From assembly GCA_002269645.1 (NCBI GenBank), contig NIVC01003564.1:1-64000 (forward strand): DNA of 64,000 bases, in the 5' to 3' direction. Both the position numbers and the translations under genes were made by a program. The first letter of the stretch is position 1, and the number at the start of each line of letters is the position of its first letter. The DNA is from Macrostomum lignano (Eukaryota). Below the pieces are notes generated by a model. It was not told where the DNA came from, ran no database searches, and was given only the letters and a program-made list of their open reading frames with translations. Of this stretch, positions 14 through 50,792 are shown piece by piece.

Positions 14-3000
14 TCGGTGGGATTTAGCAGGCGGAGCACCTGCCGCTGGTCGAATCTCTGTGCGAGTTGCGCACAGGTGAGGCCGTGATTGTCTCGATGA
101 TTGGCATCGGCTCCTGCATCCATCAGAGTCTTGGCTGCTCGCACGTGACCGGCTTGGCAGGCTCGTGAGAGAGCAGTGCGACCGTGGTTGTCTTGAGCGT
201 GGATGGAGGCGCCGAGTAGTATGAGTTTGTGAATGATTTCGTGATGACCAGCATGAGCAGCGAGGATGAGAGCGGTGGCTCGGGTGTTTTCCTCTGTTAG
301 ATCGATATGGACGGTAGATCGACGTGGTGTGCTGAATAGGTGATGATTGAGGAGTGTGGCGGCAAGAGCGACGTGTGATTGAGAGATGGAGAGACGGAGG
401 AGGTGTGTGATTTGAGGTGGTGTCATTTGAGAGAGGGCGGTGTTGAGAAGAGAGTTCCGGTTTTGGATAGCCATGCTAGCAGTGAAGTTGAGGATGGTGT
501 TGTATTGGAAGAGCCATTGAGGCTTTAGGCCGAAGTAGGCAACGACAGATTCATCAAGACGAGAGCAGGCATTGAGTACGCATTGGAAGCGGAGATTTGC
601 TCTCTGATGGGGAGTAGAGAGACACGAGATAAGGAACTGAACAATGTGAATATGACCATCGTCTGCAGCTTTTTCGGCAACTTTGATGCAGCAGTTGTTT
701 TTTTTGATTGGTCATTGATTAGTGGTACGAGGAACTTGACGATGTGAAAGTGACCATACTCTGCAGCCTCTTCGGTAGCCTTGATGCAGCAGGCGTCTTT
801 TTTGATTGGTCATTGATTAGTGGTACGAGGAACTCGACGGCTTTAAAGTGACCATCGTAAGCAGCCGTTTCGGCAGGCCAGATGAAGCAGTCGTCTTTTT
901 TTGATTGGTCATTGATCAGTGGTACGAGGAACTCGACGATTTGAAAGTGACGATTTCTTGCAGCAATTTCGGCCGCTTTGATGCAGCAGGCGTCTTTATT
1001 TGATTGGTCATTGATTAGTGGTACGAGGAACTCGACGGCTTTAAAGTGACCTCGGAATGCAGCCTTTTCGGCAGCGTAGATGCAGCAGGCGTCTTTTTTT
1101 GATTGGTCATTGATTAGTGGTACGAGGAACTCGACGATTTGAAAGTGACATCGGAATGCAGCCTCTTCGGCAGCTTTGATGCAGCAGGCGTCTTTATTTG
1201 ATTGGTCATTGATTAGTGGTACGAGGAACTCGACGATTTTAAAGTGACCATATTTTGCAGCCTCTTCGGTAGCCTTGATGCAGAAGGCGTCTTTTTTTGA
1301 TTGGTCATTGATTAGTGGTACGAGGAACTCGACGGCTTTAAAGTGACCATTCATTGCAGCCTTTTCGGCAGCTTTGATGCAGCAGGCGTCTTTATTTGAT
1401 TGTTCATTGATTAGTGGTATGAGGAACTCGACGATTTGAAAGTGACCATATTCTGCAGCCTCTTCGGTAGCCTTGATGCAGAAGGCGTCTTTTTTTGATT
1501 GGTCATTGATTAGTGGTACGAGGAACTCGACGGCTTTTAAGTGACCATATTTTGCAGCCTTTTCGGCAGCGTAGATGCAGCAGGCGTCTTTTTTTGATTG
1601 GTCATTGATTAGTGGTACGAGGAACTCGACGATTTGAAAGTGACCTCGGAATGCAGCCTTTTCGGCAGCTTTGATGCAGAAGGCGTCTTTTTTTGATTGG
1701 TCATTGATTAGTGGTACGAGGAACTCGACGATTTGAAAGTGACCTCGGAATGCAGCCTTTTCGGCAGCTTTGATGCAGCAGCCGTCTTTTTTTGATTGGT
1801 CATTGATTAGTGGTACGAGGAACTTGACGATGTGAAAGTGACCATATTCTGCAGCCTCTTCGGTAGCCTTGATGCAGAAGGCGTCTTTTTTTGATTGGTC
1901 ATTGATTAGTGGTACGAGGAACTCGACGGCTTTAAAGTGACCATCGTAAGCAGCCTTTTCGGCAGCGTAGATGCAGCAGGCTTCTTTTTTTGATTGGTCA
2001 TTGATTAGTGGTACGAGGAACTCGACGATTTGAAAGTGACCATTCATTGCAGCAATTTCGGCAGCGTAGATGCAGCAGGCGTCTTTATTTGATTGGTCAT
2101 TGATTAGTGGTACGAGGAACTCGACGATTTGAAAGTGACCACTGATTGCAGCTTTTTGGGCAGCCTTGATGCAGCAGGCGTCTTTATTTGATTGGTCATT
2201 GATTAGTGGTACGAGGAACTCGACGATTTGAAAGTGACCACTGATTGCAGCTTTTTGGGCAGCCTTGATGCAGCAGGCGTCTTTATTTGATTGGTCATTG
2301 ATTAGTGGTACGAGGAACTCGACGGCTTTAAAGTGACCATCGTAAGCAGCCATTTCGGCAGCGTAGATGCAGCAGGCTTCTTTTTTTGATTGGTCATTGA
2401 TTAGTGGTACGAAGAACTCGACGATTTGAAAGTGACCATTCATCGCAGCATTTTCGGCAGCCTTGATGCAGCAGGCGTCTTTATTTGATTGGTCATTGAT
2501 TAGTGGTACGAGGAACTCGACGGCTTTAAAGTGACCATCGTAAGCAGCCTTTTCGGCAGCGTAGATGCAGCAGGCTTCTTTTTTTGATTGGTCATTGATT
2601 AGTGGTACGAGGAACTCGACGATTTGAAAGTGACCATTCATTGCAGCCTTTTCGGCAGCCTTGATGCAGCAGGCGTCTTTATTTGATTGGTCATTGATTA
2701 GTGGTACGAGGAACTCGACGATTAGAAAGTGACCATTTAGCAGCAATTTCGGCGCCTTGATGTAGCAGGCTCTTTTTTTGATTGGTCATTGATTAGTGGT
2801 ACGAGGAACTCGACGATTTGAAAGTGACCATTCATTGCAGCATTTTCGGCCGCTTTGATGCAGCAGGCGTCTTTATTTGATTGGTCATTGATTAGTGGTA
2901 CGAGGAACTCGACGATTAGAAAGTGACCACGGATTGCAGCAATTTCGGCCGCCTTGATGTAGCAGGCGTCTTTTTTTGATTGGTCATTGATTAGCGGTAC

Positions 3001-3252
3001 GAGGAACTCGACGATTAGAAAGTGACCACGGATTGCAGCAATTTCGGCAGCTTTGATGCAGCAGGCGTCTTTATTTGATTGGCCATTGATTACTGGTACG
3101 AGGAACTGGACATCTTGAAGGCGATCATTTGATGCAGCAGTTAGAGTAGCTTGGACGATCTCGCGCAAGGTGCCATTGGTTGCAGCACGTCGAGCAGTTG
3201 GCGTGATGTTGTCGGTGGTGAGGGGCTGATGGCGGCTTGGATTCTGGGCCAT
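14..3252 (-). pseudogene. ANK-repeat-cGLR gene copy A, exon 1 (25 PLIND-type 33-aa repeats plus canonical ANK C-terminal part); gene continues off the left edge; several small frameshifts
   Basis: ATG at 3252 (MAQNPSRHQ). ORFs 2737..3252 and 719..2746 are joined by 1-, 1- and 2-nt deletions at ~2770/2755/2740, with further 1-nt losses at ~800 and ~700. 14..700 is open by manual translation (...RFQCVLNACSRL...RATALILAAHAGHHEIIHKLILLGAS...RTALSRACQAGHVRAAK...LRLLNPTE). It ends at the same GA|GTCAGT donor (13) as copies B-D. The lesions could be assembly errors. Confidence 0.75.
700..3100 (-). repeat. Coding 99-bp (33-aa) ankyrin-like tandem array, copy A (25 motifs)
   Basis: PLIND anchor spacing 711 to 3082 = 2371 nt + 5 deleted nt = 24 x 99. 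Confidence 0.9.
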
Positions 3253-3261: not shown

Positions 3262-3600
3262 AAGGGAAGCAAGGAAGAGGTTAACAAGGTTAACAAGGTT
3301 AACAAGGAGGGAAGGAAAGAGGGAAAAGGAGGGAGGGAGGGAGGAGGAGGGAGGGAGAAGGAGGGAGGGAAAGGAGAAAGGGAAAAGGAGGGGAAGGAGA
3401 AAGGAAGGGGAAGGAGAGAGGAAAAGGAAAGAGGGAAGAAGGAGGGAGAGAGGGAGTAGAAGGGGAGGGAGGGAGAAGGAGGGGAGGGAGTGAGAAGGAG
3501 GGGAGGGAGGAAGGAGGAGACGGAGGGGAGGGAGGGAGAGAGGAGGGAGGGAGATGAGAAGGAGGGGAGGGAGGGAGAGAGGAGGGAGTGTTTTTTAAAG
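3262..3600. repeat. GA-rich low-complexity tract upstream of copy A (pyrimidine tract on the coding strand); similar tracts at ~36100-36345 and ~50810-50960
   Basis: Almost pure G/A on the + strand. Confidence 0.85.
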
Positions 3601-4221
3601 AGAGGAAGAAAAGGAGAGCGAATGAGAGAGCAAGGGGGCTGCTTTGTGGCTGTAAAAATTTTTATAAGGAATTTTAAAAATCTTCATGAGTCCTACCTAT
3701 GATCCGTGGCTGCTGTCAGTGTGGCAGATGTCAGTCAAAGGTTTGCGCAGCCGGTTGCCAGAAAGACCCATTGTGCCTCAGTGCAGTGTGAGATCTTTAA
3801 ATGCATTTAACGGCCCACTGAGCGGTGTAAAATGCTGCTCAGTCCCGCAGTGCATCGGTTTGAGGAGGCTCTCTAATGTGCAAGAAGATGCATTGTTAAA
3901 TTTGCCCTGCTTTCTCTCTCACTCTGCCCACTGCCGCAGCTGCAGAGCATTGGCTGGCAACAGTGCTCTGGTTCTCTCCCGACTCTCCTATGCTTTCGCC
4001 TTTTTCCTCTCGTGCGCAGCTCAGGCAGTTGAGAATCTGCTGGGTTGAATTAGGCGAGTGCATTTAGCAGCAGTAATTGACATTCTTTTGCTTTTCTGCA
4101 GAAGCCTCTCATCACTGCCGCTCCTTCTGTTTTATTTTTTAGCAGGTGGCAACCGGCCCCTGTGGCGAGATTTGGCTTGCAAGCGCAGGCGGAAACTTGC
4201 AGTGACGATTGGATTAATGAA

Positions 4222-5655
4222 ACCATCCCTACAGTCACCATCCCTACAGTCACCATCCCTACAGTCACCATCCCTACAGTCACCATCCCTACAGTCACCC
4301 TCCCTACAGTCACCATCCCTACAGTCACCATCCCTACAATCACCATCCCTACAGTCACCATCCCTACAATCACAATCCCTACAGTCACCCTCCCTACAGT
4401 CACCATCCCTACAGTCACAATCCCTACAATCACAATCCCTACAGTCACCATCCCTACAGTCACAATCCCTACAATCACAATCCCTACAGTCACCCTCCCT
4501 ACAGTCACCATCCCTACAATCACAATCCCTACAGTCACCCTCCCTACAGTCACCATCCCTACAGTCACAATCCCTACAGTCACCCTCCCTACAGTCACCA
4601 TCCCTACAGTCACCATCCCTACAATCACAATCCCTACAGTCACCCTCCCTACAGTCACCATCCCTACAGTCACCATCCCTACAATCACAATCCCTACAGT
4701 CACCCTCCCTACAGTCACCATCCCTACAATCACAATCCCTACAGTCACCCTCCCTACAGTCACCATCCCTACAGTCACCATCCCTACAGTCACCATCCCT
4801 ACAGTCACAATCCCTACAGTCACCCTCCCTACAGTCACCATCCCTACAGTCACAATCCCTACAATCACAATCCCTACAGTCACCCTCCCTACAGTCACCA
4901 TCCCTACAATCACAATCCCTACAGTCACCCTCCCTACAGTCACCATCCCTACAGTCACAATCCCTACAGTCACCCTCCCTACAGTCACCATCCCTACAGT
5001 CACCATCCCTACAATCACAATCCCTACAGTCACCCTCCCTACAGTCACCATCCCTACAGTCACCATCCCTACAATCACAATCCCTACAGTCACCCTCCCT
5101 ACAGTCACCATCCCTACAATCATAATCCCTACAGTCACCCTCCCTACAGTCACCATCCCTACAGTCACCATCCCTACAATCACAATCCCTACAGTCACCC
5201 TCCCTACAGTCACCATCCCTACAATCACAATCCCTACAGTCACCCTCCCTACAGTCACCATCCCTACAATCACAATCCCTACAGTCACCCTCCCTACAGT
5301 CACCATCCCTACAGTCACCATCCCTACAGTCACCATCCCTACAGTCCCCATCTCTACAGTCACCATCCCTACAGTCACCATCCCTACAGTCACCATCCCT
5401 ACAGTCACCATCCCTACAGTCACCATCCCTACAGTCACCATCCCTACAGTCACCATCCCTACAGTCACCATCCCTACAGTCACCATCCCTACAGTCACCA
5501 TCCCTACAGTCACCATCCCTACAGTCACTATCCCTACAGTCACCATCCCTACAGTCACCATCCCTACAGTCACCATCCCTACAATCACCATCCCTACAGT
5601 CACCCTCCCTACAGTCACCATCTCTACAGTCACCATCCCTACAGTCACCATCCCT
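4222..5655. repeat. 15-bp minisatellite (CCCTACAGTCACCAT), ~95 copies
   Basis: Direct reading; open in several frames on both strands. Confidence 0.97.
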
Positions 5656-6344
5656 GCAGCTCCAAAATCTTGTCCTGACCCTCCGCTGCAGCCACTGCAC
5701 CCGAAGAAGAGCTGCTCCTGGGGCAAAGTTGCAAAAGAAAAGCACCGAAAATGTTTTCGCAGTCTCTGACCTTCATCTGGAATGGCCCCACCCAGCTCAG
5801 TACGCGCAGCTGCAAAAAGAAAAGTGCTTGAGTTCGTAATCGCCCATACTGGCCTCTCCAACCACCCAAACCCCCCGTAACCCCTGTCTCAGACAATTAA
5901 CAAGTCCAACTAGTATGAAGCTCCATCCAGCTCACTACTCAAAACAGAGTAGGTTGCCCCTGGCAACCGCAAAGCCTGGACAGAGCTCGCCTCTAAACCG
6001 CAGGGAGGCTGGCAGAGCGGTGCGCTGGCCTGAGAATAGCGAGCGAGCAGAGATAATTGCTGCTTGAGTTTGAGCTGGCCTCTCTACCCACCCGCTCCCT
6101 ACGGCTCAAGACTGCCTTATTCTATCATAAATAAGCCATTGCTATCAACCATTGTTAGCAGGAATGCAAAATGCAGTGCATTGCTGCGGCCGAGAGCTGG
6201 ATAGAACAGAGATGGGCTGCCAGAGCTCGGCTGTACTTTAATGATAAACAACTGATGAAGCCCGAGACTGCAATTGAGAGGCTGGGCAGCTCAGCCGAAA
6301 CGTGTCTACCTCACGCGAAAATTTGCATGCACTGTGGTTCGAAA

Positions 6345-6600
6345 TTGGGGGAGATTCTGATGGGGCATTGGGAGAGGGGAGATTCTGATGGGGCATTCGG
6401 AGGGGGGAGATTCTGATGAGGCATTGGGGGAGATTCTGATGGGGCATTGGGGGAGATTCTGATGAGGCATTGGGGGAGATTCTGATGAGGCATTGGGGGA
6501 GATTCTGATGGGGCACTGGGGGAGATTCTGATGGGGCATTGGTGGGAGATTCTGATGTGGCATTGGTAGGAGATTCTGATGGGGCACTGGGGGGAGGGGA
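6345..6600. repeat. ~22-bp minisatellite (GGGGAGATTCTGATGGGGCATT), related to 62430..63000
   Basis: Direct reading. Confidence 0.9.
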
Positions 6601-6712
6601 GATTTTAAAGTGGAATTGGGGAGAACTCCAGTTTTGACACTAAATCTCATGAAAACAAAAAAGAAACTACTTATTATAAGTAGTATAAAGCAGCAACAAA
6701 TACTCAGCTGAC

Positions 6713-7085
6713 CTTTTCTCCCCCTTGCTGCAGCTGCTTGCTTCTGCTCCTAGTCGTCATAACAGTTGACGCAGATTTTCCACCGCTGTTCTTTTGCGCA
6801 GAAGCAGCGGTGGACGGAGTTTTCTTTTTCTTTTTCTTACTACTGACGCTAGTAGTAGATGCGGTGGTAGAATTGAACGACTTATCGGCTGGGGCCCTGG
6901 CCGAGCTGAATATGAGAGGCGGGGAGGCCCTGGTCAGCTTGAGCAGATCGTGAGGCCATTCGATTTCCCTGTTGCCATCACTGGCCAGAACCGGGTAGGG
7001 CTTCTGGCGATCCTCAATGCGCTACTGCAGCTGCAGGAGGCGGCTGCTGCTGATGGCGCTGCTGTCCTGGGCTGCTGCCGGGCCT
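6713..7085 (-). pseudogene. Orphan diverged copy of the GPATCH8-like exon (63084..63440)
   Basis: Clear nucleotide homology to 63084..63440, including the donor and downstream intron. In-frame TAG at 7022-7024; no neighbouring exons. Confidence 0.8.
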
Positions 7086-7094
7086 CACTTAGAT

Positions 7095-7321
7095 TCCATA
7101 GATACCCCTAGATTAGCCATAGATACCCCTAGATTACCCATAGATACCCCTAGATTACCCATAGATACCCTAGATTAGCCATAGATACCCCTAGATTACC
7201 CATAGATACCCCTAGATTACCCATAGATACCCCTAGATTACCCATAGATACCCCTAGATTACCCATAGAGATCCCCTAGATTACCCATAGATACCCCTAG
7301 ATTATCCATAAATACCCCTAG
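7095..7321. repeat. 21-bp minisatellite (CCATAGATACCCCTAGATTAC)
   Basis: Direct reading. Confidence 0.92.
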
Positions 7322-7582
7322 GTCACTCATCGATAAAAACGCAAGTAGCCAGCCAGAATTCAAATCTGTCAGCCCCGCCCCCATGCCCAGCAGTCTTTTG
7401 CACGACTTTTAGAAAAGCTAAAAGCAAAACTTGGCATCTGGTTTAGTTTAAATTAACAGGGTTGGGAAGTTACTTTGGCAAAACCGTGAAACCGGACCGG
7501 AGAGATTTCTACTGCAGTTTCTGGCAGACCGATTTTTGTGCTGGCACCAAAGGTGCATCTTTGGAAAGATTACTGTCACCAC

Positions 7583-8221
7583 AATAGGAGTCCATGTTTA
7601 ATAGGAGTCCATGTTTAATAGGAGTCCATGTTTAATAGGAGTCCATGTTTTATAGGAGTCCATGTTTAATAGGAGTCAATGTTTAATAGGAGTCCATGTT
7701 TAATAGGAGTCCATGTTTAATAGGAGTCCCTGTTTAATAGGAGTCCATGTTTAATAGGAGTCCATGTTTAATAGGAGTCCATGTTTAATAGGAGTCCATG
7801 TTTAATAGGAGTCCCTGTTTAATAGGAGTCCATGTTTAATAGGAGTCCCTGTTTAATAGGAGTCCATGTTTTATAGGAGTCCATGTTTAATAGGAGTCAA
7901 TGTTTAATAGGAGTCCATGTTTAATAGGAGTCCATGTTTAATAGGAGTCCCTGTTTAATAGGAGTCCATGTTTAATAGGAGTCCCTGTTTAATAGGAGTC
8001 CATGTTTAATAGGAGTCCCTGTTTAATAGAAGTCCCTGTTTAATAGGAGTCCCTGTTTAATAGGAGTCCATGTTTAATAGGAGTCCATGTTTAATAGGAG
8101 TCCATGTTTAATAGGAGTCCGTGTTTAATAGGAGTCCATGTTTAATAGGAGTCCATGTTTAATAGGAGTCCATGTTTAATAGGAGTCCATGTTTAATAGG
8201 AGTCCATGTTTAATAGGAGTC
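7583..8221. repeat. 17-bp minisatellite (AATAGGAGTCCATGTTT), ~37 copies
   Basis: Direct reading; paralogous array at 20120..21205. Confidence 0.97.
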
Positions 8222-8907
8222 CCCGATGATGGCATTAGCACAGTCCCCGAATAACTGTACTGATTGCTGTACTAAAGCAGCGGTGACACCAAATGCAACT
8301 TTCTCAGGCTCAATCTGTATCAAGGAGATCTAGAAATTGAAGGCACCGACAGCCGGTGAATTTACCAGTTGCTATCGCGAGGAAAGCTGCGGCACCCCCA
8401 GACTGGGGCTGTTTTCATTTCAAACTGCCAACTCACCTGTTTGTGCAACGAGAGTGCGAACGCTATTTACAACCATGGACCATTCTTTAAGGCACTTGTC
8501 CGGAAATCGTCAAAGGTGGCCACTAGCATATAACTGCAATAAATGCGTGATTGACAGATCAGAAGGACCAGATAAGTTCACATCTAATGAGTATCTCCGA
8601 CTATTCAGTGCTTACAAATATGTTGAATATTTTCTCACTTCTGTGCAGTGCTCATTTCTGTTCAAAGTAATTCGCATTTGTTCAATTGGCCGAATCTGTG
8701 GGTTCTCAAATGAAGCTGGAGTTGCTGAGGCTCCCAACAAAATGGGATCCATGGTTTTCAGGGACTGCACTTTTCCACACCAGTGTTTCGAATCCGTCAC
8801 AGTGAAGAGAGCTCAGAATTCTGAATGAGTTGAGCACTCAAAGGATTTCGGTTGGTTTATATCTGAGCAGATGCAGGCAGCTGACAGAACGCACGTATTT
8901 TCCAGAC

Positions 8908-9954
8908 ATGAGTCAGTGGCGCCAATACAGATGAGTCAGTGGCGCCAATACAGATGAGTCAGTAGCGCCAATACAAATGAGTCAGTGGCGCCAATACAGA
9001 TGAGTCAGTGGTGCCAATACAAATGAGTCAGTGGCGCCAATACAGATGAGTCAGTGGCGCCAATACAGATGAGTCAGTGCGCCAATACAGATGAGTCAGT
9101 GGCGCCAATACAGATGAGTCAGTGGCGCCAATACAGATGAGTCAGTGGCGCCAATACAAATGAGTCAGTGGCGCCAATACAGATGAGTCAGTGGCGCCAA
9201 TACAGATGAGTCAGTGGCGCCAATACAGATGAGTCAGTGGCGCCAATACAAATGAGTCAGTGGCGCCAATACAGATGAGTCAGTGGCGCCAATACAGATG
9301 AGTCGGTGGCGCCAATACAAATGAGTCAGTGGCACCAATACAGATGAGTCAGTGGCGCCAATACAGATGAGTCAGTGGCGCCAATACAGATGAGTCAGTG
9401 GCGCCAATACAAATGAGTCAGTGGCGCCAATACAGATGAGTCAGTGGCGCCAATACAAATGAGTCAGTGGCGCCAATACAAATGAGTCAGTGGCGCCAAT
9501 ACAGATGAGTCAGTGGCGCCAATACAAATGAGTCAGTGGCGCCAATACAAATGAGTCAGTGGCGCCAATACAAATGAGTCAGTGGCGCCAATACAGATGA
9601 GTCAGTGGCGCCAATACAGATGAGTCAGTGGCGCCAATACAGATGAGTCAGTGGCGCCAATACAAATGAGTCAGTGGCGCCAATACAGGTGAGTCAGTGG
9701 CGCCAATACAGATGAGTCAGTGGCGCCAATACAGATGAGTCAGTGGCGCCAATACAGATGAGTCAGTGGCGCCAATACAGATGAGTCAGTGGCGCCAATA
9801 CAAATGAGTCAGTGGCGCCAATACAGATGAGTCAGTGGCGCCAATACAGATGAGTCAGTGGCGCCAATACAGATGAGTCAGTGGCGCCAATACAGATGAG
9901 TCAGTGGCGCCAATACAAATGAGTCAGTGGCGCCAATACAGATGAGTCAGTGGC
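8908..9954. repeat. 23-bp minisatellite (ATGAGTCAGTGGCGCCAATACAG), ~45 copies
   Basis: Direct reading; paralogous array at 21944..23198. Confidence 0.97.
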
Positions 9955-10290
9955 GGTCCTGCAGTCCGAGCTCCTCTGCCGGCCGTCAGATGGTGGGCAG
10001 GTTGATTAAAATTACGGATCTTGCAGGTAAAACCCTCTAGAAGTCTAATTTTTTATCTCTTAATAAAGTAAATTAAGTAAGCTAAGAATTAAATTATTAA
10101 AATTTGTTTCGTATGTCCAAAACATCAAAAAAATGTGTTTAGACTTGTGGTACTAAGAGCGACATAATTATTCAAAATATTCATGCACGAATTTATTGAT
10201 TTTTTACCGATATGAAAAAATAGATTTATTTAGATAGATGAACAGATAGATAGCACTAGATAAAATAACGGAATTGTAGCTGATACTAAT

Positions 10291-10670
10291 CAGGCTGTCA
10301 GTCAGTGATTGTTCATGAGGGAGCTGTCAGGCTGTCAGTCACTGAATGCTCATGAGGGAGCTGTCAGGCTGTCAGTCAGTGATTGTTCATGAGGGAGCTG
10401 TCAGGCTGTCAGTCACTGAATGTTCATGAGGGAGCTGTCAGGCTGTCAGTCACTGAATGCTCATGAGGGAGCTGTCAGGCTGTCAGTCACTGAATGCTCA
10501 TGAGGGAGCTGTCAGGCTGTCAGTCACTGAATGTTCATGAGGGAGCTGTCAGGCTGTCAGTCACTGAATGCTCATGAGGGAGCTGTCAGGCTGTCAGTCA
10601 CTGAATGCTCATGAGGGAGCTGTCAGGCTGTCAGTCACTGAATGCTCATGAGGGAGCTGTCAGGCTGTCA
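10291..10670. repeat. 37-bp minisatellite (CATGAGGGAGCTGTCAGGCTGTCAGTCACTGAATGCT), ~10 copies, 3' of copy B
   Basis: Direct reading; same position 3' of copies C and D. Confidence 0.95.
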
Positions 10671-11002: not shown

Positions 11003-12475
11003 TCACTGCAGTCTCATCCGACTGAGCTTGGCGTGAATCCAGCTGTCGCTCTGCTCCGCTGCAGTTTCCATGGCAACCAGGCGCCCCAAGTCGGCCCCGT
11101 CTCGCCGCAGCCTCGCCCTCGCCCACAGCCTCCGCTCCTCATCTTCCCTGCTGCGGTGAGCGCCGCTGTTGCTGCCGCTGCGGCTCGAAACTCGCCACCG
11201 CTTCTGCCTGACCCAGCCGATCTTCTCCTCGTCCTGCGTCTCCATGGCGACGCGTCTCTCTTTCTCGATCATCTCCATCTGCTGCAGGCTGAGCTCCACG
11301 TGCTCGCGGCAGTCGCTGTAGTGAGCCAGAGTGAGCAGCTCCTCCAAGTCCGGGTCTCCAAGCAGCTGTTCAATCCAATGATCGAATGCGATTGCAGGTG
11401 CGCGATTGCGGAGCAGCTCAGCTTGGAGACTCCAGCTCAGGCAGCGGAAGTTCACGTACAGGTGGGAGGAGAGAGGCTGCGACAGGCAATTCGGTTGCGC
11501 TATATTCCGACCCTTGAAAATCCTGTGGCGTCAACCCTGACACAACCTGATGTCTCTGCAACTCCATCGCGAGTCTCGCAGCCTTCTCAGATTCTCCGAA
11601 CTTCAAATGTGCCATGGCGGTCATGCACAGGACGGCGCACTTGCACCACTGCAGCTCATGGAGGAGACTGATCTGCCTCAATAGAATATCTCTGTCGCTC
11701 GATTCCGACTGCAGCTCGCTCACACACTGGTGCACAACACTGTACACGTCTGCGAAAGTTGAATAACTTATTTTCCCGATCTCCGTGACAGCAGGTGGCG
11801 CTGTCAGAGGCAGCAGAGTGAACGGGTGAAAGTAGAACTTCTCTGACTGCAGAGGTCTCATGAGTCTCCTTAGCTGCTCGACCACTCCGCCGATGTCGCT
11901 TCTCAACTCATGAAGTCGGTCTCGAACCCTCGCCTTTGTGTTGTCGAAGTCGCCGCCGATTCCAGCGTTCTTGAAGTAAAGCGGAGCGTCGGGCATGAAG
12001 AAGTGCGGCATGCACTCATCCGGCGAGCTGCTCGAGTCGATGAAGCTCAGCATCATGTGGAGAGACTCCTTGAGCCGAGCGATCAGATTGTGGGGCTGCC
12101 AAGCCTCACTTGAAGGATCTGTGCCATGCCTCTCCAGCATGAAAAATAGCAGAGTCTTTGCATGGTAGGTCTTGAGTCCAGGTGTGTCCAGAGTGAGCGG
12201 CAAGTGTCTCTTGAAGATGAACTTGATGAGTGTGAACAGCTGGCCCTGGACTGTGCTCAGCTGACTCATGATCCGTTTCTCTTGGAAGCTGAAGCTCACT
12301 CTGAGCTCGTTGGTCGAGCTCGGTCTGGTCGCCCGAACGAGGTGAACATTTCCACTGATAGTAAGCAGTTTTCTAATTCTGTCTACGCCGAAACTGCTGC
12401 AGCACGGGATCGCATGGCACGTGTCCTGTGCAGGCCGCACACCGCATGGCGTGGCTGTCACAGCAGGTTGGCTGC
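11003..12475 (-). pseudogene. Exon 4 of copy B: Mab-21 C-terminal lobe plus helical tail (frameshifted by deletion)
   Basis: ORFs 11418..12602 and 11003..11455; CTCTACAG acceptor at 12476. Confidence 0.8.
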
Positions 12476-13131
12476 CTGTAGAGCGCAGTGAGCGGAGAGT
12501 GGCATTGCAGCGAGTGAACAAGATGGATTGGTTTGCAACTGCTTGAATGTGTTGGTTGAGTTCGTGTGTCAGTGCTACTACTGCAATCAGTGAATGAAGC
12601 AAAGTATTCGTTAAAATGCATGCAGGCGCACCGCTAAGGAGTTGATGATGGGCGGAGAAAGAGAAAAATTATATTTTATATTTTCTAACATAAACATAGG
12701 TGAAAAGGTTGGGGGGTTGGCGGAGATATATATTGAGTACATTGTGCGTACAGTGAAAATAGAGAAAATAACCTATGGATGAAATAGGCGGCTAGCCTAG
12801 GCAAACTCATTTTTTCGACACAAGTCATTGCTTAACCTTAAGAAGTCGGGAAGGTCGTTTTCGACCACTTACAACTCCCCAGCGCAGTCGGTTCAAAATA
12901 TCTGTGGCCAGCGCACAAATTCTCTACCCACCGTTCCAGTTGGCTATGGGTCGAACTCGACCAAAAATAGAAGTAAAGCAACAAACTTTGCAAAAATGGC
13001 TCGTATTAACAGTAACAACAATAACAAACAATCAAACATAGCGGGAAAGTTTCATTCAAATTTCAAAATCATTCAAAGCTTTCTAGCACCTTAGAAGATG
13101 ATAATGGTAGATTGCGTAGTAGGTATATATA

Positions 13132-13510
13132 TTAAGACGCAGAGGGGAGGCCCCTTGCGCGCACGCGTTCGCAGAACAGGCGGGAGGGGCAGGCAGCAGC
13201 AGCCTGAGGGGTCAGCTCAAGCGCCTGCAAGTCCGCGATGAGGCAGTTCATTAGGGTGGTAGTGCGAGCCTGGCCACGGCGCAATTGCTCGGTCGGCCGG
13301 TGCAGCATGGCCAGGGCCAGAGGGACGGGCGCGCCGCGACCCAGAGTCCATAGGCAGTGGCCCAGCAGCATCTGGCGGCGCCGGCGCAGTATGGCACTCA
13401 GGGGCGGAGTTCCGGCGCGGGCCATCAGAGCGTTGGACGGCAGGCGATCCGGATAGTGCACGCCCAGCGCGTAGCGCAGCAATGATCGACTTGTGCGTAG
13501 CGCACGAGTG
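13132..13510 (-). mobile_element. 5'-truncated RTE-like LINE 3' fragment inside intron 3 of copy B
   Basis: LLRYALGVHYPDRLPSNALMARAGTPPLSAILRRRRQMLLGHCL resembles the post-RT C-terminal region of RTE-clade ORF2. Absent from intron 3 of C and D. Confidence 0.65.
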
Positions 13511-14199
13511 TCTATGGCCATTATTTCAGCCCATTACCTACTACGCAACGTCATTGTCTATAATACACAGCCTGGCCATTATTTCAGCGTGCCGGAAGCG
13601 GTAATTATTTCAGGGTAAGAGTGTGCGTGCGTGCGACTGCGTAAAGAGGGCGGTGGTTGGGCCATAAACTATAAATAAAAAAGCTGTTGGGCCATAGACT
13701 ATAAATGAATAAGCTGATGATAGGCTTGAGCGGACGAAAAGTAGCTGAAATAATGGCCAGTTGAGTTTGTCATTACGCTAGGCTGTGTCTTCTGGACAAT
13801 GATTCTTTAATTATTGTGCCACGTGCCAAAGCAGTTCACAAGACGCAGTGATGGGACTTTCCGACTGGAATGGGAATGCAATGTTTGATCTGAAAGAAAG
13901 TGTCTATGGCCCGATTTCGACCCATCCGACTGAAACGGGGAGTGACAAATATCTTCTCTGAGAGGTGACAAACCTCTGAGGTGGTGAGGCAGTGCAATTT
14001 CTGGGACTTGAGTTGACTATATAGTTTTCAGAATTTTTTTAAAGCGAAATGAGTGCTGAAAGGAATTTCAGCCAGTTCTCAAACGCAGGTGGAACTTGTG
14101 AGCTCTGAAGTTCAGGTAAAGAATAAAAAATTGAGCAAAGTTGACGGTCGCTTGGATTAGGGATTGCGGCATTGTGATGATGAGCGGAGCGTCACTGAC

Positions 14200-14534
14200 C
14201 TGCTCCGACTGTCACCTGTGCGTGGCCCTCCGTGACCTGGAGCCGAGTGTCGTCGCTGCAGAAATCTTTTCTGTCACAGCCACCTTCCAGATGGAACACT
14301 TGCCCGGCAACCAGCACAGTCCAGTCAATGTCGGAGTCTGCAGCTGTCCTGCCGTTGACTTGCACCAGACTGTTGGCCCAGCCCTCTGCGTAGCTGCCGG
14401 TCATTTGCCTGAAATCCTGTGTGAGGTCTTGAACTACTTCTTTCAGCCAGTCAGCCAGTTCCTGCTGACACTTTGCTCTCTGCTGGGTGAATCCCGCATT
14501 GCTGAGCAATTGATGCAGCTCTTTGTCAGAGAGT
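14200..14534 (-). CDS. Exon 3 of copy B: nucleotidyltransferase core (GS...DID)
   Basis: LSDKELHQLLSNAGF...MTGSYAEGWANSLVQVNGRTAADSDIDWTVL. 335 nt, CCAG acceptor and GTCAGT donor. Confidence 0.85.
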
Positions 14535-15394
14535 CTGGAAGGATAGTGTGGTGGTTGGGAGAGGTGAGAGTGCATATTTGCAGAGTGGACCAAGGAGAGT
14601 GAGACTCACATTGAGCGGCTTTGAGCGGTTGTGTTGGTGTGCTGTTGTTTTCTGGAATGTGTGAATGAAAGCTAGGTGAGGAAGTGAAGTAATAGGAAGT
14701 GAAATGGCAATTAATGGGAACTGACTCGGTGGGATTCAGCAGGCGAAGCACCTGCCGCTGGTCGAATCTCTGTGCGAGTTGCGCACAGGTGAAGCCATGA
14801 TTGTCTCGATGGTTGGCATCGGCTCCTCTGTCTATCAGAGCCTTGGCTGCTCGCACGTGACCGGCTTCACACGCTCGTGACAGAGCAGTCCGACCCTGAC
14901 TGTCTTCAGCACACACTGACGCACCGAGATCGATGAGTTTCTCAATGAGCTCGTGATGACCTGCATCAGCTGCCAGCATGAGAGCAGTGGCTCCAGTGCT
15001 GTCTGGCAGATCGACAAGCTGTGTGCTGACTCGCTCATCATTGATCAGTGTGACAGCGAGAGCGACGTGTCTTTGAGAGATAGAGAGACGGAGCAGCTGT
15101 GTGATGCGAGCTGGCTGCATTCGAGAGAGGGTGTCGGTGAGAACAGAGTTCCTGCCTTCGATGGCCATTGCTGCAGTGAAGCTGAGGATGGTGCTGTATT
15201 GGAAGAGCCAGTCGGGCTCGAGGCCGAGGCATGCAACGACATCTTCAGCAACACGAGAGCAAGCTTTGAGTACGCATTGGAAGCGGAGATTTTCTCTCTG
15301 ATGGGAACTAGAGAGACACGAGATAAGGAACTGGGCGATTTGAAAGTGACCGTATTGTGTAGCAATTTCTGCAGCCTCGATGCAGAAGGCGTCT

Positions 15395-16510
15395 TTTTTT
15401 GATTGGTCATTGATAAGTGGTACGAGGAACTCGACGATTTGCAAGTGACCACGGAGTGCAGCCTTTTCGGCAGCCTTGATGCAGCAGGCGTCTTTATTTG
15501 ATTGGTCATAGATTAGTGGTACGAGGAACTCGACGGCTTGAAAGTGACCCATGAATGCAGCATTTTCTGCAGCCTTGATGCAGCAGGCGTCTTTATTTGA
15601 TTGGTCATTGATTAGTGGTACGAGGAACTCGACGATTTGCAAGTGACCATTCATTGCAGCCTTTTCGGCAGCCTTGATGCAGCAGGCGTCTTTATTTGAT
15701 TAGTCATTGATTAGTGGTACGAGGAACTCGACGATTTGAAAGTGACCATTCATTGCAGCCCCTTCGGCAACCTTGATGCAGCAGGCGTCTTTATTTGATT
15801 GGTCATAGATTAGTGGTACGAGGAACTCGACGATTTGCAAGTGACCCTTGATTGCAGCCCATTCGGCAGCCTTGATGCAGTAGGCGTCTTTATTTGATTG
15901 GTCATAGATTAGTGGTACGAGGAACTCGACGATTTGCAAGTGACCACGGATTGCAGCCCCTTCGGCAACCTCGATGCAGCAGGCGTTTTTATTTGATTGG
16001 TCATAGATTAGTGGTACGAGGAACTCGACGATTTGCAAGTGACCATTCATTGCAGCCCATTCGGCAGCCTTGATGCAGCAGGCGTCTTTATTTGATTGGT
16101 CATTGATTAGTGGTACGAGGAACTCGACGATTTGCAAGTGACCACGGATTGCAGCCCCTTCGGCAACCTTGATGCAGCAGGCGTCTTTATTTGATTGGTA
16201 ATTGATTAGTGGTACGAGGAACTCGACTATTTGCAAGTGACCATTCATTGCAGCCCATTCGGCAGCCTTGATGCAGCAGGCGTTTTTATTTGATTGGTAA
16301 TTGATTAGTGGTACGAGGAACTCGACTATTTGCAAGTGACCATTCATTGCAGCCCATTCGGCAGCCTTGATGCAGCAGGCGTTTTTATTTGATTGGTCAT
16401 TGATTAGTGGTACGAGGAACTCGACGATTTGAAAGTGACCACGGAGTGCAGCCTCTTCGGCAGCCAATGTGCAGCAGCAGTCTTTTTTTGATTGGTCATT
16501 GATTAGTGAT
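15395..16510 (-). repeat. Coding 99-bp ankyrin-like tandem array, copy B (12 motifs)
   Basis: Anchor spacing 15406 to 16495 = 1089 = 11 x 99. Confidence 0.9.
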
Positions 16511-16906
16511 ACGAAAAACTGGACGTCTTCAAAGCGATTATGAGATGCGGCACTTACAGTAGCTCGAACGATATCGTAGAAGTTGGCATGGGTTGCAGCA
16601 GTTGGCGTGATGTTGTCGGTGCTGACGGCCTGATGGCGGCTTTGATTTTGGTCCATAGTTCTGGTGAGAGGTGTTGATGTTATGAAGCGATGTGTAGAGG
16701 GAGGAAGTGAAGTGATGTAGATAATTGTAAATTTTACCATAAAGCACTACCTTAAGTAATTTTCTAATATAATTTAATCATATACTAATTTAACTTAATT
16801 TAAACTCCCAATCTGTTTTTGTATCTATCGAGTGTACAGTTGGACCTCATTTGCTTGAATGTCTAAAATACCGCTTGTTCAAGGTTGTGATTGAAGAGTT
16901 GCAAAC

Positions 16907-19915: not shown

Positions 19916-20119
19916 TGAGGCAGTTCAGCATCGGTGCGGCAGTCAGCAGCTCTGATCTCCAGCTCGGCAGCCAGACAGTCAATTCCGTCAAGAAGGTGCA
20001 CAGCCGCCTCCGTGTCAGCTGCAGCTGCCGCCACGGGCAGGCAGAATGCACTGCCGAGGTGGCTCTCGCTGTGGCACTCAGTGGCTGAGCATCGAATGCT
20101 GCTCGGCTTTGAGCTCCGA

Positions 20120-36000: not shown

Positions 36001-36054
36001 TGGCGTGTTGTTCTCGGTGGTGACAGGCTGATGGCGGCTTTGATTTTGGTCCAT
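25453..36054 (-). CDS. ANK-repeat-cGLR (Mab-21/cGAS-like nucleotidyltransferase) gene copy C, 71 repeats, ~3251 aa if one homopolymer indel is corrected
   Basis: Exons 36054..28284, 28209..28168, 28089..27755, 27059..25453. The only break is A6 instead of A7 at ~31922-31927; the sister repeat at ~31130 has A7. NTase motif GSYAEG...DSDIDW; Mab-21 motifs ELRVSFSFQEK, LIKFIF, TYHAKTLL, CMPHFFMP. Confidence 0.85.
27755..28089 (-). CDS. Exon 3 of copy C: nucleotidyltransferase core
   Basis: Same 335-nt exon, motifs and splice sites as in B and D. Confidence 0.88.
28950..35905 (-). repeat. Coding 99-bp ankyrin-like tandem array, copy C (71 motifs) with higher-order repeats
   Basis: Anchor spacing 28964 to 35893 = 6929 + 1 = 70 x 99. 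Consensus VPLINDQSNKDACCIKAAExAAxxGHFQIVEFL aligns without gaps to the 33-aa ankyrin consensus (AAxxGH.EIV..LL). Confidence 0.92.
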
Positions 36055-44135: not shown

Positions 44136-44519
44136 AGGCATCAGCATCGGTGCGGCAGTCAGCAGCTCTGATCTCCAGCTCGGCAGCAGGCAGTCAATTC
44201 CGTCAAGAAGGTGCACAGCCGCCTCCGTGTCAGCTGCAGCTGCCGCCACGAGCAGGCGGAATGCACTGCCGAAGCGGCTCTCGCTGTGGCACCCAGTGGC
44301 TGAGCATTGAATGCTGTTCGGCTTTGAGCTCCGAATAAAAGTTGGGTGGCGGATATGAGATTTTCATGAATAAGGCTCGTTGTTCATTGGTTCTAATTTC
44401 TGGTTGCGAATGATGCAGAAGAAAGAAGCTGGATTGGAGAATTGTTCGGGTTTGAGCACTGCTTCTGAAAAGCATTCTCAGCTTTAGATTGAAGATGCGT
44501 TGCAATAGAGATATAGTTT

Positions 44520-46430: not shown

Positions 46431-46728
46431 AAAAGTACCTATAAAATATCTAGCTATCTATTCTAAAAAGCATTGGCAATTGGGCATTGAAGTCCGCAGA
46501 ACAAAATCGCAGAGAAAAGCCCGCATCAAAGCAGACACGCAGTTTGAACAGAAAAAGCAATTCAGCATGCAGTGCGAACTGAATTGCAGCACAAGTGTAC
46601 ATGAACTGGAGTTCATAGCAGAAGGGCTGCTCGCACTCGATGGCTGAAAAGGAAGGAAAATATAAAGACAATTTACAGCAAAACGGTAAAAGTACACAGT
46701 TTTTGTCTGAAATTCGAGTCCAGAAAAA

Positions 46729-48358
46729 TTAATAAATCTGAGTAAGGAAGTCCTCAGGTCCCTGCAGTCTCATTCGAATAAGCTTGGCGTGAATCCAGCT
46801 GTCTCTCTGCTCTGCTGCTGTTTCCATGGCAACGAGGCGACCCAAGTCGGCCCCGTCTCGCCGCAGCCTCGCCCTAGCCCACAGCCTCCGCTCCTCATCT
46901 TCCATGCTGCGGTGAGCGCCGCTGTCGCTGCCGCTGCGGTTCGAAACTCGCCACCGCTTCTGCCTGACCCAGCCGATCTTCTCCTCGTCCTGCGTCTCCA
47001 TGGCGACGCGTCTCTCTTTCTCGATCATCTCCATCTGCTGCAGGCTGAGCTCCACGTGCTCGCGGCAGTCGCTGTAGTGAGCCAGAGTGAGCAGCTCCTC
47101 CAAGTCCGGGTCTCCAAGCAGCTGTTCAATCCAATGATCGAATGCGATTGCAGGTGCGCGATTGCGGAGCAGCTCAGCTTGGAGACTCCAGCTCAGGCAG
47201 CGGAAGTTCACGTACAGGTGGGAGGAGAGAGGCTGCGACAGTCTGGCTGTGAACAGAGTCTGCGTGAACTCGGGAAGGAATGGGAAGCGAGGCGGAGAGT
47301 CGCAGGGGAGGCAGAACCTCCACGCCCAGTCTGAGTATTCTGGCAGTTTTATATCACTCAAACTCCATTTGCGACTCTCATCTCGAATATCCTGCGGCTT
47401 CAACCCTGACTCAAGCTGATGTCTCTGCAGCTCCATCGCGAGTCTCTCAGCCTCCTCAGATTCTCCGAACTTCAAATGCGTCATGGCGTCATGCACAGGG
47501 CGGCGCACTTGCACCACTGCTGCTCATGCAGGAGACTGAGCTGCCTCATCCGGGTGTTTCTGTCGCTCGATTCCGACTGCAGCTCGCTCACACACTCGTG
47601 CACCACACTGTACACATCTGCGAACTTGTAGTACTTTTTGGGACATTCACTTCTTTCCCGGATCTTCGTGACAGCAGGCGGCGCTGTTAAAGGCAGCAGA
47701 GTGAACGGGTGAAAGTAGAACTTTTCTGACTGCAGAGGTCTCACGTGTGTTCTCAGCTGCTCGACCACTCTGTCAATGTCGCTTCTCAGCTCACGAAGTC
47801 GGTCTCGAACCCTCGACTTCGTGTTGTCGAAGTCGCCGCCGATTCCAGCGTTCTTGAAGTAGAGCGGAGCGTCGGGCATGAAGAAGTGCGGCATGCACTC
47901 ATTGGGCGACCTCCTTGACCTCATAAATTTAAGCATCATGTCGAGCGACTCCTTGAGCAGAGCGATCAGATTGTGGGGCTGCCAAGCCTCAGTTTCAGGA
48001 CTTTTGCCATACCTCTCCAGCATTGCGAAGAGCAGAGTCTTTGCATGGTAGGTCTTGAGTCCAGGTGTGTCCAGAGTGAGCGGCAAGTGTCTCTTGAAGA
48101 TGAACTTGATGAGTGTGAACAGCTGGCCCTGGACTGTGCTCAGCCGTCTCATGATGTCTTTCTCTTGGAAGCTGAAGCTCACTCTGAGCTCGTTGGTCGA
48201 GCTCGGTCTGGTCGCGCGAACGAGGTGAACACAATTATCGTTTTTAATTAGTTTTCTAACTCTGCCTACACAGAAGCTGCTGCAGCAGTGAATCGCATGG
48301 CACGTGTCCTGTGCAGGCCGCACACCGCACGCCGTGGCTGTCACAGCAGGTTGGCTGC
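46729..48358 (-). CDS. Exon 4 of copy D: Mab-21 C-terminal lobe plus helical tail (one 1-nt indel)
   Basis: ORFs 47481..48575 and 46729..47517; acceptor at 48359. Confidence 0.8.
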
Positions 48359-50792
48359 CTGTAGAGCGCAGTGAGCGGAGAGTGGCAGTGTGGCGAGTGA
48401 ACAAGATGGATTGGTTTGCAACTGCTTGAATGTGTTGGTTGAGTTCGTGTGTCAGTGCTACTACTGCAATCAGTGAATGAAGCAAAGTATTCGTTGAAAT
48501 GCATGCAGGCGCACCGCTATGGAGTTGATGATGGGCGGAGAAAGAGAAAATTATTTTAGGGCAAAGAGAAAGCAAGGCATTGCTTCATAATTGTTTAATA
48601 ACCTCTGAGGTGGTGAGGCAGTGCAATTGCTGGGACTTTAGTTGAGTTATTGCTTGCCAGAAATTTTATTCAAAGCGAAATGAGTCCTGAAAGGAATGTC
48701 AGCCAGGTCTCAAACTCAGGTTGAACTTGTGAGCTCTGAAGTTCAGGTATCGAATAAAAAATTCAGCAAAGTTGACGGGGGCTTGGATTGGGGATTGCGG
48801 CATTGTGATGATGAGCGCAGCGTCACTGACCTGCTCCGACTGCCACTTGTGCGTGGCCCTCCTTGACCTTGAGCGGAGTGTCGTAGCCGCAGGAACCTTT
48901 TCTGTCGCAGCCACCTTCCAGATGGAACATTTGCCCAGCAACCAGCACAGTCCAGTCAATGTCGGAGTCTGCAGCTGTCCTGCCGTTGACTTGCACCAGA
49001 CTGTTTGCCCAGCCCTCTGCGTAGCTGCCGGTCATTCGCCTGTGATCCTGTGTGAGGACTCGAGCGACTTCTTGTAGCCAGTCAGCCAGGTTTTGCTGAC
49101 ACTTTGCTCTCTGCTGGGTGAATCCTGCATCGCTGAGCAGTTGATGCAGCTCTTTGTCAGAGAGTCTGGAAGGATAGCGTGGTGGGTGGGAGAGGTGAGA
49201 GTGCATATTTGCAGAGTGGGCCAAGGAGAATGAGACTCACATTGAGCGGCTTTGAGCGGTTGTGTGGGTGTGCTGTTGTTTTCTGGAATGTGTGAATGAA
49301 AGCGAGGTGAGGAATTGAAGTGATAGGAAGTGGAATGGCAATTAATGGGAACTGACTCGGTGGGATTCAGCAGGCGGAGCACCTGCCGCTGGTCGAATCT
49401 TTGTGCGAGTTGCGCACAGGTGAGGCCGTGATTGTCTCGATGGTTGGCATCCGCTCCTGCATCCATCAGAGCCTTGGCTGCTCGCACGTGACCGGCTTCG
49501 CACGCTCGTGACAGAGCAGTCCGACCCTGACTGTCTTCAGCACGCACTGACGCACCGAGATCGATGAGTTTCTCAATGAGCTCGTGATGACCTGCATCAG
49601 CTGCCAGCATGAGAGCAGTGGCTCCAGTGCTGTCTGGCAGATCGACAAGCTGTGTGCTGACTCGCTCATGATTGATCAGCGTGACAGCAAGAGCGACGTG
49701 TCTTTGAGAGATAGAGAGACGGAGCAGCTGTGTGATGCGAGCTGGCTGCATTCGAGAGAGGGTGTCGGTGAGAACAGAGTTCCTGCCTTCGATGGCCATT
49801 GCTGCAGTGAACCTGAGGATGGTGGTGGATTGGAAGAGCCATTTGGGCTCGAGGCCGAGGGAGGCAACTGCATCTTCGCGCAGACGAGAGCAAGCTTTGA
49901 GTACGCATTGGAAGCGGAGATTTTCTCTCTGATGGGAACTAGAGAGACACGAGATAAGGAACTGGACGATTTGAAAGTGACCATTGTCTGCAGCTTTTTC
50001 TGCAGCCTCGATGCAGAAGGCGTCTCTGTTTGATTGGTCATTGATTAGTGGTACGAGGAACTCGACGGCTTGAAAGTGACCCATGAATGCAGCATTTTCT
50101 GCAGCCTTGATGCAGCAGGCGTCTTTATTGGATTGGTCATTAATTAGTTGTACGAGGAACTGGACGATTTGAAAGTAACCACGGATTGCAGCCTCTTCGG
50201 CAGCCCTGATGCAGCAGGCGTCTTTATTTGATTGGTCATTGATTAGCGGTACGAGAAACTGGACGATTTGAAAATGACCATTCATTGCAGCTTTTTCGGC
50301 AGCCTTGATGCAGCAGGCTTCTTTATTTGATTGGTCATTGATTAGTGGTACGAGGAACTCGACGGCTTGAAAGTGACCCATGAATGCAGCATTTTCTGCA
50401 GCCTTGATGCAGCAGGCGTCTTTATTGGATTGGTCATTAATTAGTTGTACGAGGAACTGGACGATTTGAAAGTAACCACGGATTGCAGCCTCTTCGGCAG
50501 CCCTGATGCAGCAGGCGTCTTTATTTGATTGGTCATTGATTAGCGGTACGAGAAACTGGACGATTTGAAAATGATCATTCATTGCAGCTTTTTCGGCAGC
50601 CTTGATGCAGCAGGCTTCTTTATTTGATTGGTCATTGATTTGTGATACGAAAAACTGGACGTCATCAAAGCGATTTTGAGATGCGGCACGTAGAGTAGCT
50701 CGGACGATGTCGCAGAAGTTTGCATGGGTTGCAGCAGTCGGCGTGATGTTGTCGGTGCTGAAGGCCTGATGGCGGCTTTGATTTTGGCCCAT
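46729..50792 (-). CDS. ANK-repeat-cGLR gene copy D, 7 repeats, ~1147 aa if one 1-nt indel is corrected
   Basis: Exons 50792..49357, 49282..49241, 49165..48831, 48358..46729. A 1-nt loss at ~47487 (catggcgtc vs catggcggtc in B/C) splits ORFs 47481..48575 and 46729..47517. The TGA stop of B/C is GGA here, adding GPEDFLTQIY. Confidence 0.8.
48831..49165 (-). CDS. Exon 3 of copy D: nucleotidyltransferase core
   Basis: Same 335-nt exon, motifs and splice sites. Confidence 0.88.
50025..50645 (-). repeat. Coding 99-bp ankyrin-like tandem array, copy D (7 motifs; a 3-unit block duplicated)
   Basis: Anchor spacing 50037 to 50631 = 594 = 6 x 99. The MN/IR/FM triplet occurs twice. Confidence 0.9.

Follow-up and report, generated by a model that had tools for sequence, protein, structure and literature searches.

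Ankyrin repeat arrays of variable length joined to a predicted cGAS-like core in a gene cluster of the flatworm Macrostomum lignano

Animal cGAS-like receptors (cGLRs), including members with ankyrin (ANK) or tetratricopeptide repeat (TPR) modules, share the bilobed Mab-21/cGAS fold, the active-site residues G-S...D-x-D...D, and lineage-specific radiations (Li et al. 2023; 10.1101/2023.02.22.529553, PMC9980059). In that survey, 87% of cGLRs were stand-alone enzymes, a few percent of members had an added ANK or TPR module, and most platyhelminths were without predicted cGLRs beyond Mab21-like proteins (PMC9980059). The DNA analyzed here, the first 64 kb of contig C3564 (NIVC01003564.1; this whole stretch is called the window) in the Macrostomum lignano assembly Mlig_3_7 (PacBio/Canu, 764 Mb, 5270 scaffolds; PMC5730564), contained four paralogs of an ANK-cGLR family, designated genes A, B, C, and D, all on the minus strand. 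Arrays of 7 to 71 ANK units of 99 bp, changes in unit copy number, the size of the expansion, and the clustering of its genes are features of the M. lignano family that are unmentioned by Li et al. The family also differed from the cGLRs described there in having a nucleotidyltransferase (NTase) lobe too divergent for the Pfam model PF03281 and in that STING was undetected.

Members of this family have been cloned before. Rows 89 to 93 of Table S3 in Li et al. list five of them from M. lignano, prepared for a screen with double-stranded DNA (dsDNA) and poly(I:C) and including PAA68676.1 (P0003 in this analysis) and PAA93208.1, the latter being highly similar to genes in the window. ANK arrays were absent from all five, which were core-only constructs (PMC9980059). 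A literature search returned no paper on the M. lignano arrays, their expansion, or their clusters. A first-pass annotation of the window, made from the sequence alone, had left open whether the system had been described. The answer is divided: the ANK-cGLR fusion class and these proteins had already been catalogued, and the shuffling of the arrays, the expansion to about 200 copies, and the undetected STING appear to be undescribed.

Fungal NOD-like receptors (NLRs) with highly internally conserved ANK, TPR, or WD repeats share with the M. lignano family repeats that are about 85% or more alike, repeat-number polymorphism, reshuffling of repeats both inside a paralog and from one paralog to another, variability located on the concave binding face, and combinatorial effector domains (PMC4986451). 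Sites under selection in the fungal repeats were placed on the concave face (Dyrka et al. 2014, PMC4986451; Paoletti et al. 2007, as cited there). In contrast to fungal NLRs, the signaling module in M. lignano is a cGAS-like NTase rather than a NACHT or NB-ARC NTPase, and the host is an animal. No significant NOD-type (NACHT/NB-ARC) domain was found in the window gene products, in which a weak NCH2 match (E = 0.024) fell below the cutoff, and the sampled relatives likewise showed no NACHT or NB-ARC domain. Judged by domain content, the family is NLR-like at the level of its repeats but is not an NLR.

Three further systems combine or diversify solenoid repeats. In RNase L/OAS signaling, an innate immune pathway, ANK repeats likewise act together with an NTase of the same fold superfamily, and it is through these repeats that RNase L binds the nucleotide signal 2-5A; there, unlike in the M. 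lignano family, the repeats are carried by the receiver and not by the synthase, and they number a fixed nine, with no array dynamics. Lamprey variable lymphocyte receptors (VLRs) and designed ankyrin repeat proteins (DARPins) share with the present arrays a solenoid repeat scaffold with diversity at few surface positions. Compared to that of VLRs, the diversity found here is germline, with no sign of somatic assembly. When the unit is aligned without gaps to the ANK consensus, its positions 22 and 23 fall on positions 13 and 14 randomized in DARPins, whereas the β-turn positions that are randomized in DARPins are conserved here (D-A-C-C-I).

The reading preferred in this study, to which about even chances are given, is that the germline-diversified array recognizes ligands and the cGLR core signals, in a Macrostomum-specific family of about 200 copies.

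Gene structure and domain architecture

Arrays were called with Tandem Repeats Finder (period 99). The four same-strand paralogs with intronless arrays that the first-pass annotation had reported were recovered with the same range of unit numbers (Table 1), and each array was coding and lay within a single uninterrupted exon. This long ANK exon began with M(G/D/A)QN(Q/P)SRHQ in all four genes and, 3' of the array, encoded degenerate ANK repeats followed by three canonical ones. An array alone (seven units) scored as ankyrin in Pfam (Ank_4, 93.8 bits in 6 stretches; Ank_2, 78.1 bits), and the 99-nt phase was kept in 108 of the 111 unit spacings across arrays. Units were 85 to 91% alike, with mean identities of 0.85 to 0.90. 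Identity of about 96 to 99% was confined to higher-order blocks of units, so that the earlier description of the repeats as near-identical holds for such blocks only and not for units overall.

In genes B, C, and D, the ANK exon was connected to the NTase exon through two short introns that flank a mini-exon. The exon 1 donor reads ...ACCGA/GTCAGT (phase 2; slashes mark splice sites), and the mini-exon, ended by the strong donor AAT/GTGAGT, occupied the same sites in all three genes. The mini-exon is 42 nt long, and the frame is therefore kept whether it is included or skipped. Exon 2 encodes the NTase N-lobe (GSYAEGW...DSDID), and exon 3 encodes the rest of the cGAS-like core and a TPR-like tail. 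The last acceptor was placed at CTCTACAG/GC, 105 nt downstream of a TTGCAG site, because the database proteins P0003, P0004, and P0008 read ...AVGAG-SQPAVTATACGV... at this junction. An earlier splice model, in which a donor GA/GTCTCA led straight to exon 2 and the last exon opened at the acceptor GATTGCAG/TAG, was checked against database proteins because it required a weak donor; it was ruled out by the same three proteins and by P0001, in which the mini-exon and the CTCTACAG/GC acceptor are used.

P0001 (A0A1I8GUK9; UniProt, 1139 aa), which derives from the annotation of another, independent M. lignano assembly, was 99.6% identical to gene D exon 1 (50792-49356), with the same seven units. 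It included the mini-exon (...NPTE-KQQHTHTTAQSRS-I-LSDKELHQLLSDAGF..., opening LSDKELHQ) and then continued through both later junctions into the enzyme. P0003 (PAA68676.1, BOX15_Mlig016402g1) is an RNA-seq-derived GenBank model with exons mapped in the genome, and the GenBank gene models of M. lignano rest on RNA-seq (PMC5730564). The union of ANK and Mab-21 parts in one protein, as originally proposed, was upheld by both proteins. The in-frame splice from the array to the NTase exon and the Mab-21 lobe stood as well, since A0A1I8GUK9 reads through it, with the gene model corrected for the mini-exon and the acceptor 105 nt downstream.

Gene A was correctly described as ending at the same donor, at base 14, where the contig also starts; gene A was therefore cut by the assembly, not by biology. 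Its 98.6%-identical copy on contig C1809 continued into an NTase exon (GSYAEGW motif DNA at C1809:58911; tblastn on L033) and a Mab-21 exon (C1809:60645-61787). In the model BOX15_Mlig016402g1 (P0003), exons 1 and 2 in the region of C1377:98273-99856 (98-100 kb) are joined to a last exon about 17 kb downstream at 79570-81173 (the two regions are loci L041 and L035), and no last exon was found within the 7.7 kb after exon 2 on C1377. This join may represent a very long intron or a chimera arising from transcript mapping among near-identical paralogs.

The enzyme part was identified by motif, profile, and fold. The motifs GSYAEG...DSDID, ELRVSFSFQEK, LIKFIF, TYHAKTLL, and CMPHFFMP, quoted in the first-pass annotation, were all present in genes B, C, and D. 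Mab-21_C (PF20266) matched gene D exon 3 with 30.3 bits against a cutoff of 24.1 and was above the cutoff in 11 of 11 family members (best E = 4.5e-10). A single-sequence phmmer search against the PDB returned nothing; a profile built from 11 divergent members matched cGAS (1e-6), coral cGLR1 (7e-5), and MAB21L1, over the C-lobe only. The 386-aa core was modeled with AlphaFold2 (AF2) at a mean predicted local distance difference test (pLDDT) score of 73.8 and a predicted template modeling (pTM) score of 0.80, and the best 50 Foldseek matches of this model in the PDB were all cGAS, MAB21L1, MB21D2, or Sp-cGLR1 (probability 1.0, E of ~1e-8, 340 to 400 columns, TM score of ~0.5). On this model, the enzyme part is predicted to have the bilobed cGAS/Mab-21 fold. 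The assignment to this fold made from motifs alone was thus supported by structure prediction and by hidden Markov models (HMMs) for PF20266, with Ank found on the array itself, and was not supported by PF03281.

DSDID lay about 20 residues after GS(Y/F)AEGW, and a third acidic residue, D or E, lay in ...RPAQDTC.... We take these motifs to match the pattern of cGAS, namely, G-S, E/D-x-D, and a third Asp. GSYAEGW...DSDIDW was found in 25 of 25 exon 2 copies and AQD(T/M)C in 28 of 28 exon 3 copies; across divergent members the third acidic residue was D or E, and the active-site motifs were nearly invariant in the family alignment while other residues drifted. The 260 aa after the core were modeled confidently (pLDDT, 82.8) as a helical, TPR-like region with a small sheet. 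This tail had no significant neighbor in the PDB, the best being IFIT1 and the APC6 TPR at E of ~0.35.

Array dynamics and family expansion

The gene C array included, besides several blocks of 7 units, three near-identical ones of 10 units, and that of gene D was composed of a 3-unit block present twice plus a terminal unit. Contig C1809, which is 98% identical to positions 54807-46464 of the window, carries a copy of gene D in which the 3-unit block is present four times (13 units) and a copy of gene A in which the array has 25 units, as in the window. On C1809 the D copy is directly followed by the A copy, genes B and C being absent, and the 39 kb that hold B and C are therefore missing there. 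Comparison of these assembled blocks showed gain and loss at two levels: of whole 99-bp units and multi-unit blocks within arrays, and of entire gene-plus-spacer units. The early description of a rapidly reshuffled array was accurate in this respect, with unit number (7 versus 13) and gene number both differing between blocks that are 98% identical. Genome-wide, ANK-exon open frames ranged from 376 to 2177 aa. Units from different arrays resembled each other about as much as units of one array did, and no array-specific specialization was seen.

The spacers between paralogs shared minisatellites (Table 1) that were noncoding and differed in copy number from spacer to spacer, and the duplicate on C1809 also carried the 23-mer and the 37-mer. 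Because the same minisatellites recur in the spacers, the duplication unit is considered to be the gene plus its spacer. Their variation in copy number implies in turn that the whole unit, and not the coding array only, is prone to slippage or unequal exchange.

Variation within the unit was concentrated at few positions. Per-position entropy over 110 intact units was 2.3 to 2.8 bits at unit positions 19, 22, and 23, and about 1.0 to 1.4 at positions 8, 15, 27, and 28, with most others under 0.7. Aligned without gaps to the ANK consensus, positions 19, 22, and 23 were the x sites of TPLH-x-AA-x-x-GH. From the ANK consensus and DARPin design, these positions are presumed to lie on the inner helix and turn, on the groove face of the concave surface.

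Strong protein matches to the family all came from M. lignano and combined Ank and Mab-21_C domains. At least 110 genomic copies of the last exon were scored (67 to 97% identity), and the genome-wide count of paralogs envisaged in the first-pass annotation, made with a 29-nt pattern over the GSYAEGWANS codons, gave 214 occurrences versus 0 to 1 for the reversed control. The assembly is partly redundant, and the nonredundant copy number is therefore below 214. A search of 1.8 billion representatives gave 83 clusters below 1e-30, of which six were looked up and all belonged to M. lignano; next in score were ordinary bivalve Mab-21 proteins. Exon 3 was open over at least 478 aa in 26 of 28 distinct copies, among which the median synonymous divergence (dS) was 0.13 to 0.16 and the ratio of nonsynonymous to synonymous divergence (dN/dS) was about 0.63. 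From the low dS and this ratio, the expansion is recent and weakly constrained overall, with the active site rigidly kept. Additional domains were fused in members with ANK repeats and a cGLR-like core, including a kinase (P0010), a caspase (P0029 and P0056), and WSC plus RING (P0048). A published survey has described flatworm caspases with ANK prodomains and an M. lignano caspase with a kinase-like prodomain, without drawing a link to Mab-21 (PMC11463336).

Lesions and neighboring features

Every window copy carried a defect as assembled. In gene A, the frame was shifted by units of 95 nt (~2799) and 98 nt (~823), and in gene C, it was shifted by one 98-nt unit (~31947-31850). Both 98-nt units contained an A6 run where other units have A7, and the 95-nt unit of gene A had several scattered single-base losses. 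In gene D, the frame was broken by a 1-nt deletion (one C) near 47487, which was present neither in the C1809 duplicate, where a 597-aa open frame runs intact across exon 3, nor in A0A1I8GUK9. On the nature and distribution of these changes, the lesions of A, C, and D look like long-read consensus errors. Gene B carried a C-to-T change producing an in-frame TAA stop (15700-15702), a 101-bp frameshifting deletion in the last exon (near 11485-11507), and a 1.3-kb insertion in the intron before exon 3 (~12,870-13,990) that was seen in B only; with these three lesions, gene B is probably a real pseudogene. The insertion holds a 133-aa open frame (13132-13533, minus strand), for which a Pfam scan gave no match. 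A stretch of this frame, ...RRRRQMLLGHCLW...RGQARTTT..., may resemble the 3' tail of non-long-terminal-repeat retrotransposon ORF2 proteins.

The N termini of gene D, P0001, and P0003 read MGQNQS, fitting the N-myristoylation pattern M-G-x-x-x-S. Those of genes B and C read MDQNQS and that of gene A reads MAQNPS, and these three are therefore without the Gly of the pattern. Going by these termini, some family members may be membrane anchored and others not. Just upstream of the start codons of genes A and B, the plus strand carried purine-rich GGAG/GGGA low-complexity tracts (3304-3588 and 17321-17469), which on the coding strand of these genes are pyrimidine-rich (CT-rich) leaders. Beyond the cluster, a low-complexity 1021-aa open frame (59413-62478, minus strand) in a block of 63 to 66% GC contained long Arg/Ser-rich, poly-Q, poly-G, and poly-A runs; its product is similar to SR-related nuclear proteins, and it seems to have no connection with the cluster. 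A Pfam scan of the open frames at 51 to 64 kb, including this one, gave no matches.

Table 1. Coordinates of genes, arrays, and spacer minisatellites in the 64-kb window
Feature	Position	Strand	Details
Gene A	14..3252	-	ATG 3252; first exon only, donor after base 14
Array of gene A	632-3119	-	25 units of 99 bp
Gene B	11003..16656	-	ATG 16656; exon 1 16656-14726; mini-exon 14651-14610; exon 2 14534-14200; exon 3 12475 to ~11003
Array of gene B	15326-16525	-	12 units of 99 bp
Gene C	25453..36054	-	ATG 36054; exon 1 36054-28284; mini-exon 28209-28168; exon 2 28089-27755; exon 3 27059-25453, intact
Array of gene C	28884-35913	-	71 units of 99 bp
Gene D	46729..50792	-	ATG 50792; exon 1 50792-49357; mini-exon 49282-49241; exon 2 49165-48831; exon 3 48358-46729
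Array of gene D	49957-50661	-	7 units of 99 bp
A-B spacer	3304..10670		Minisatellites: 15/45-mer 4222-5659, 17-mer 7583-8222, 23-mer 8908-9955, 37-mer 10290-10670
15-mer minisatellite GGAGAGGGAGAGGCG	19249-19921, 43482-44139		Inter-paralog spacers
17-mer minisatellite	7583-8222, 20120-21206		Spacers A-B and B-C
23-mer minisatellite	8908-9955, 21944-23198		Spacers A-B and B-C
37-mer minisatellite	10290-10670, 24559-25123, 45598-46431		Spacers A-B and B-C, and after D

Proposed function and competing readings

In the preferred reading, the family consists of cytosolic multidomain proteins that begin with the variable ANK array and continue through fixed ANK repeats and the cGLR NTase to a TPR-like helical tail. 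Diversified in the germline, the array would act as a surface that recognizes variable protein ligands, whether non-self or other. A ligand at the array may relieve inhibition of the cGLR core or may cluster it, and the core would then make a nucleotide second messenger. Sister genes with a caspase, kinase, or RING domain suggest that some members may signal directly via protein effectors.

The receiver of the nucleotide signal would probably be other than STING. With an HMM for the STING ligand-binding domain (PF15009), a six-frame search of the 764-Mb assembly, which takes each exon singly and had no positive control, gave no candidate; the control genomes gave none either. The planarian S. 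mediterranea has been reported to be without cGAS and STING (PMC13563047). The general expectation of the first-pass annotation that cGLR products act typically on STING is therefore without support in this genome. A broader form of the preferred reading, in which hundreds of germline cGAS-like enzymes carry arrays that are diversified by unequal crossover and recognize proteins and not nucleic acids, the product is read by a non-STING receptor, and the family is the animal counterpart of the fungal repeat-shuffling NLRs, is tentative and on balance doubtful.

Several observations, the undetected STING among them, weigh against the preferred reading. All four window copies are damaged as assembled, gene B in three places. 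PF03281 matched none of the 11 members and did not match exon 2, and it does occur in more distant relatives reached by the family profile; the N-lobe was therefore assigned by its fold and motifs, and the N-lobe model is of medium confidence with a TM score of ~0.5. The main text of Li et al. never mentions M. lignano among active enzymes (PMC9980059), and the clones are therefore not among the enzymes described there as active. The dN/dS of exon 3 indicates weak constraint only. Within the array unit, the ratio of nonsynonymous to synonymous polymorphism (pN/pS) was 1.46 at positions 19, 22, and 23 versus 0.68 elsewhere, with the sites picked after the data had been seen, and pS was itself raised at these positions (0.33 versus 0.12). 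The positions randomized in DARPins, taken a priori as a candidate selected set, showed no nonsynonymous excess (0.91 versus 0.88) and were ruled out as such a set. With sites chosen post hoc, pS raised, and the a priori set flat, diversifying selection at the groove-facing positions is therefore suggested at most.

The alternative that survives best is that the cGLR core itself does the sensing, with nucleic acid as one possible ligand on the precedent of cGAS and Drosophila cGLR1, and that the array is a scaffold, localization, or oligomerization module in which changes of length are tolerated and not selected. The cGLRs of known ligand all sense via the enzyme core (Li et al. 2023, PMC9980059), the repeat unit is weakly constrained (pN/pS of 0.68 to 0.88 outside the top sites), and units are about equally alike between and within arrays. 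However, variation is sharply focused on three groove-facing positions, with structural positions near-fixed, and the core-only constructs of the family have not been reported as responsive to dsDNA or double-stranded RNA. This alternative is considered unlikely.

Near invariance of the G-S, D-x-D, and third acidic residue across about 25 to 28 paralogs that differ elsewhere argues against the proteins being nonenzymatic adaptors, in which the Mab-21 fold would persist as a switch, either structural or nucleotide binding, of the kind suggested for MAB21L1 and MiD49/51, and signaling would run via partners or fused effectors. Such a role, which is judged quite unlikely, would accord with the failure to detect STING, with the members that carry a fused caspase, kinase, or RING, with the lack of reported activity for the cloned members, and with the known ANK-prodomain caspases of flatworms (PMC11463336). 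Finally, a recently amplified and largely decaying family on satellite-like DNA, with arrays that are minisatellites coding by chance, copies that are mostly pseudogenes, and some array lengths that are assembly artifacts, is improbable: a frameshift, stop, or deletion in 4 of 4 window copies, a genome with 15% simple and tandem repeats (PMC5730564), a region full of noncoding minisatellites, and the low dS and dN/dS of 0.63 among paralogs would fit it, but exon 3 frames are open over ~1.5 kb in 26 of 28 copies, the 99-nt phase is broken at only three spacings, two of them A7-to-A6 slips typical of PacBio consensus, the gene D lesion is missing from both the duplicate and the independent-assembly protein, and transcript-derived models exist.

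The arrays were cut away in the published screen, and transcripts that overlap tandem repeats were left out of the GenBank annotation; the most unusual members of the family are therefore underrepresented in catalogues. RNA interference works in M. lignano. Transgenesis is also available (PMC5730564), and with both at hand the idea is therefore testable. Thousands of animal cGLRs are predicted, the majority of them orphans without a known ligand, and an appended, diversifying ANK array would offer a concrete handle on the ligand question, in that arrays can be swapped or lengthened and it can be asked what activates the enzyme. Since the phylum is said to have mostly lost cGLR/STING signaling, the family could also point to a STING-independent receiver.

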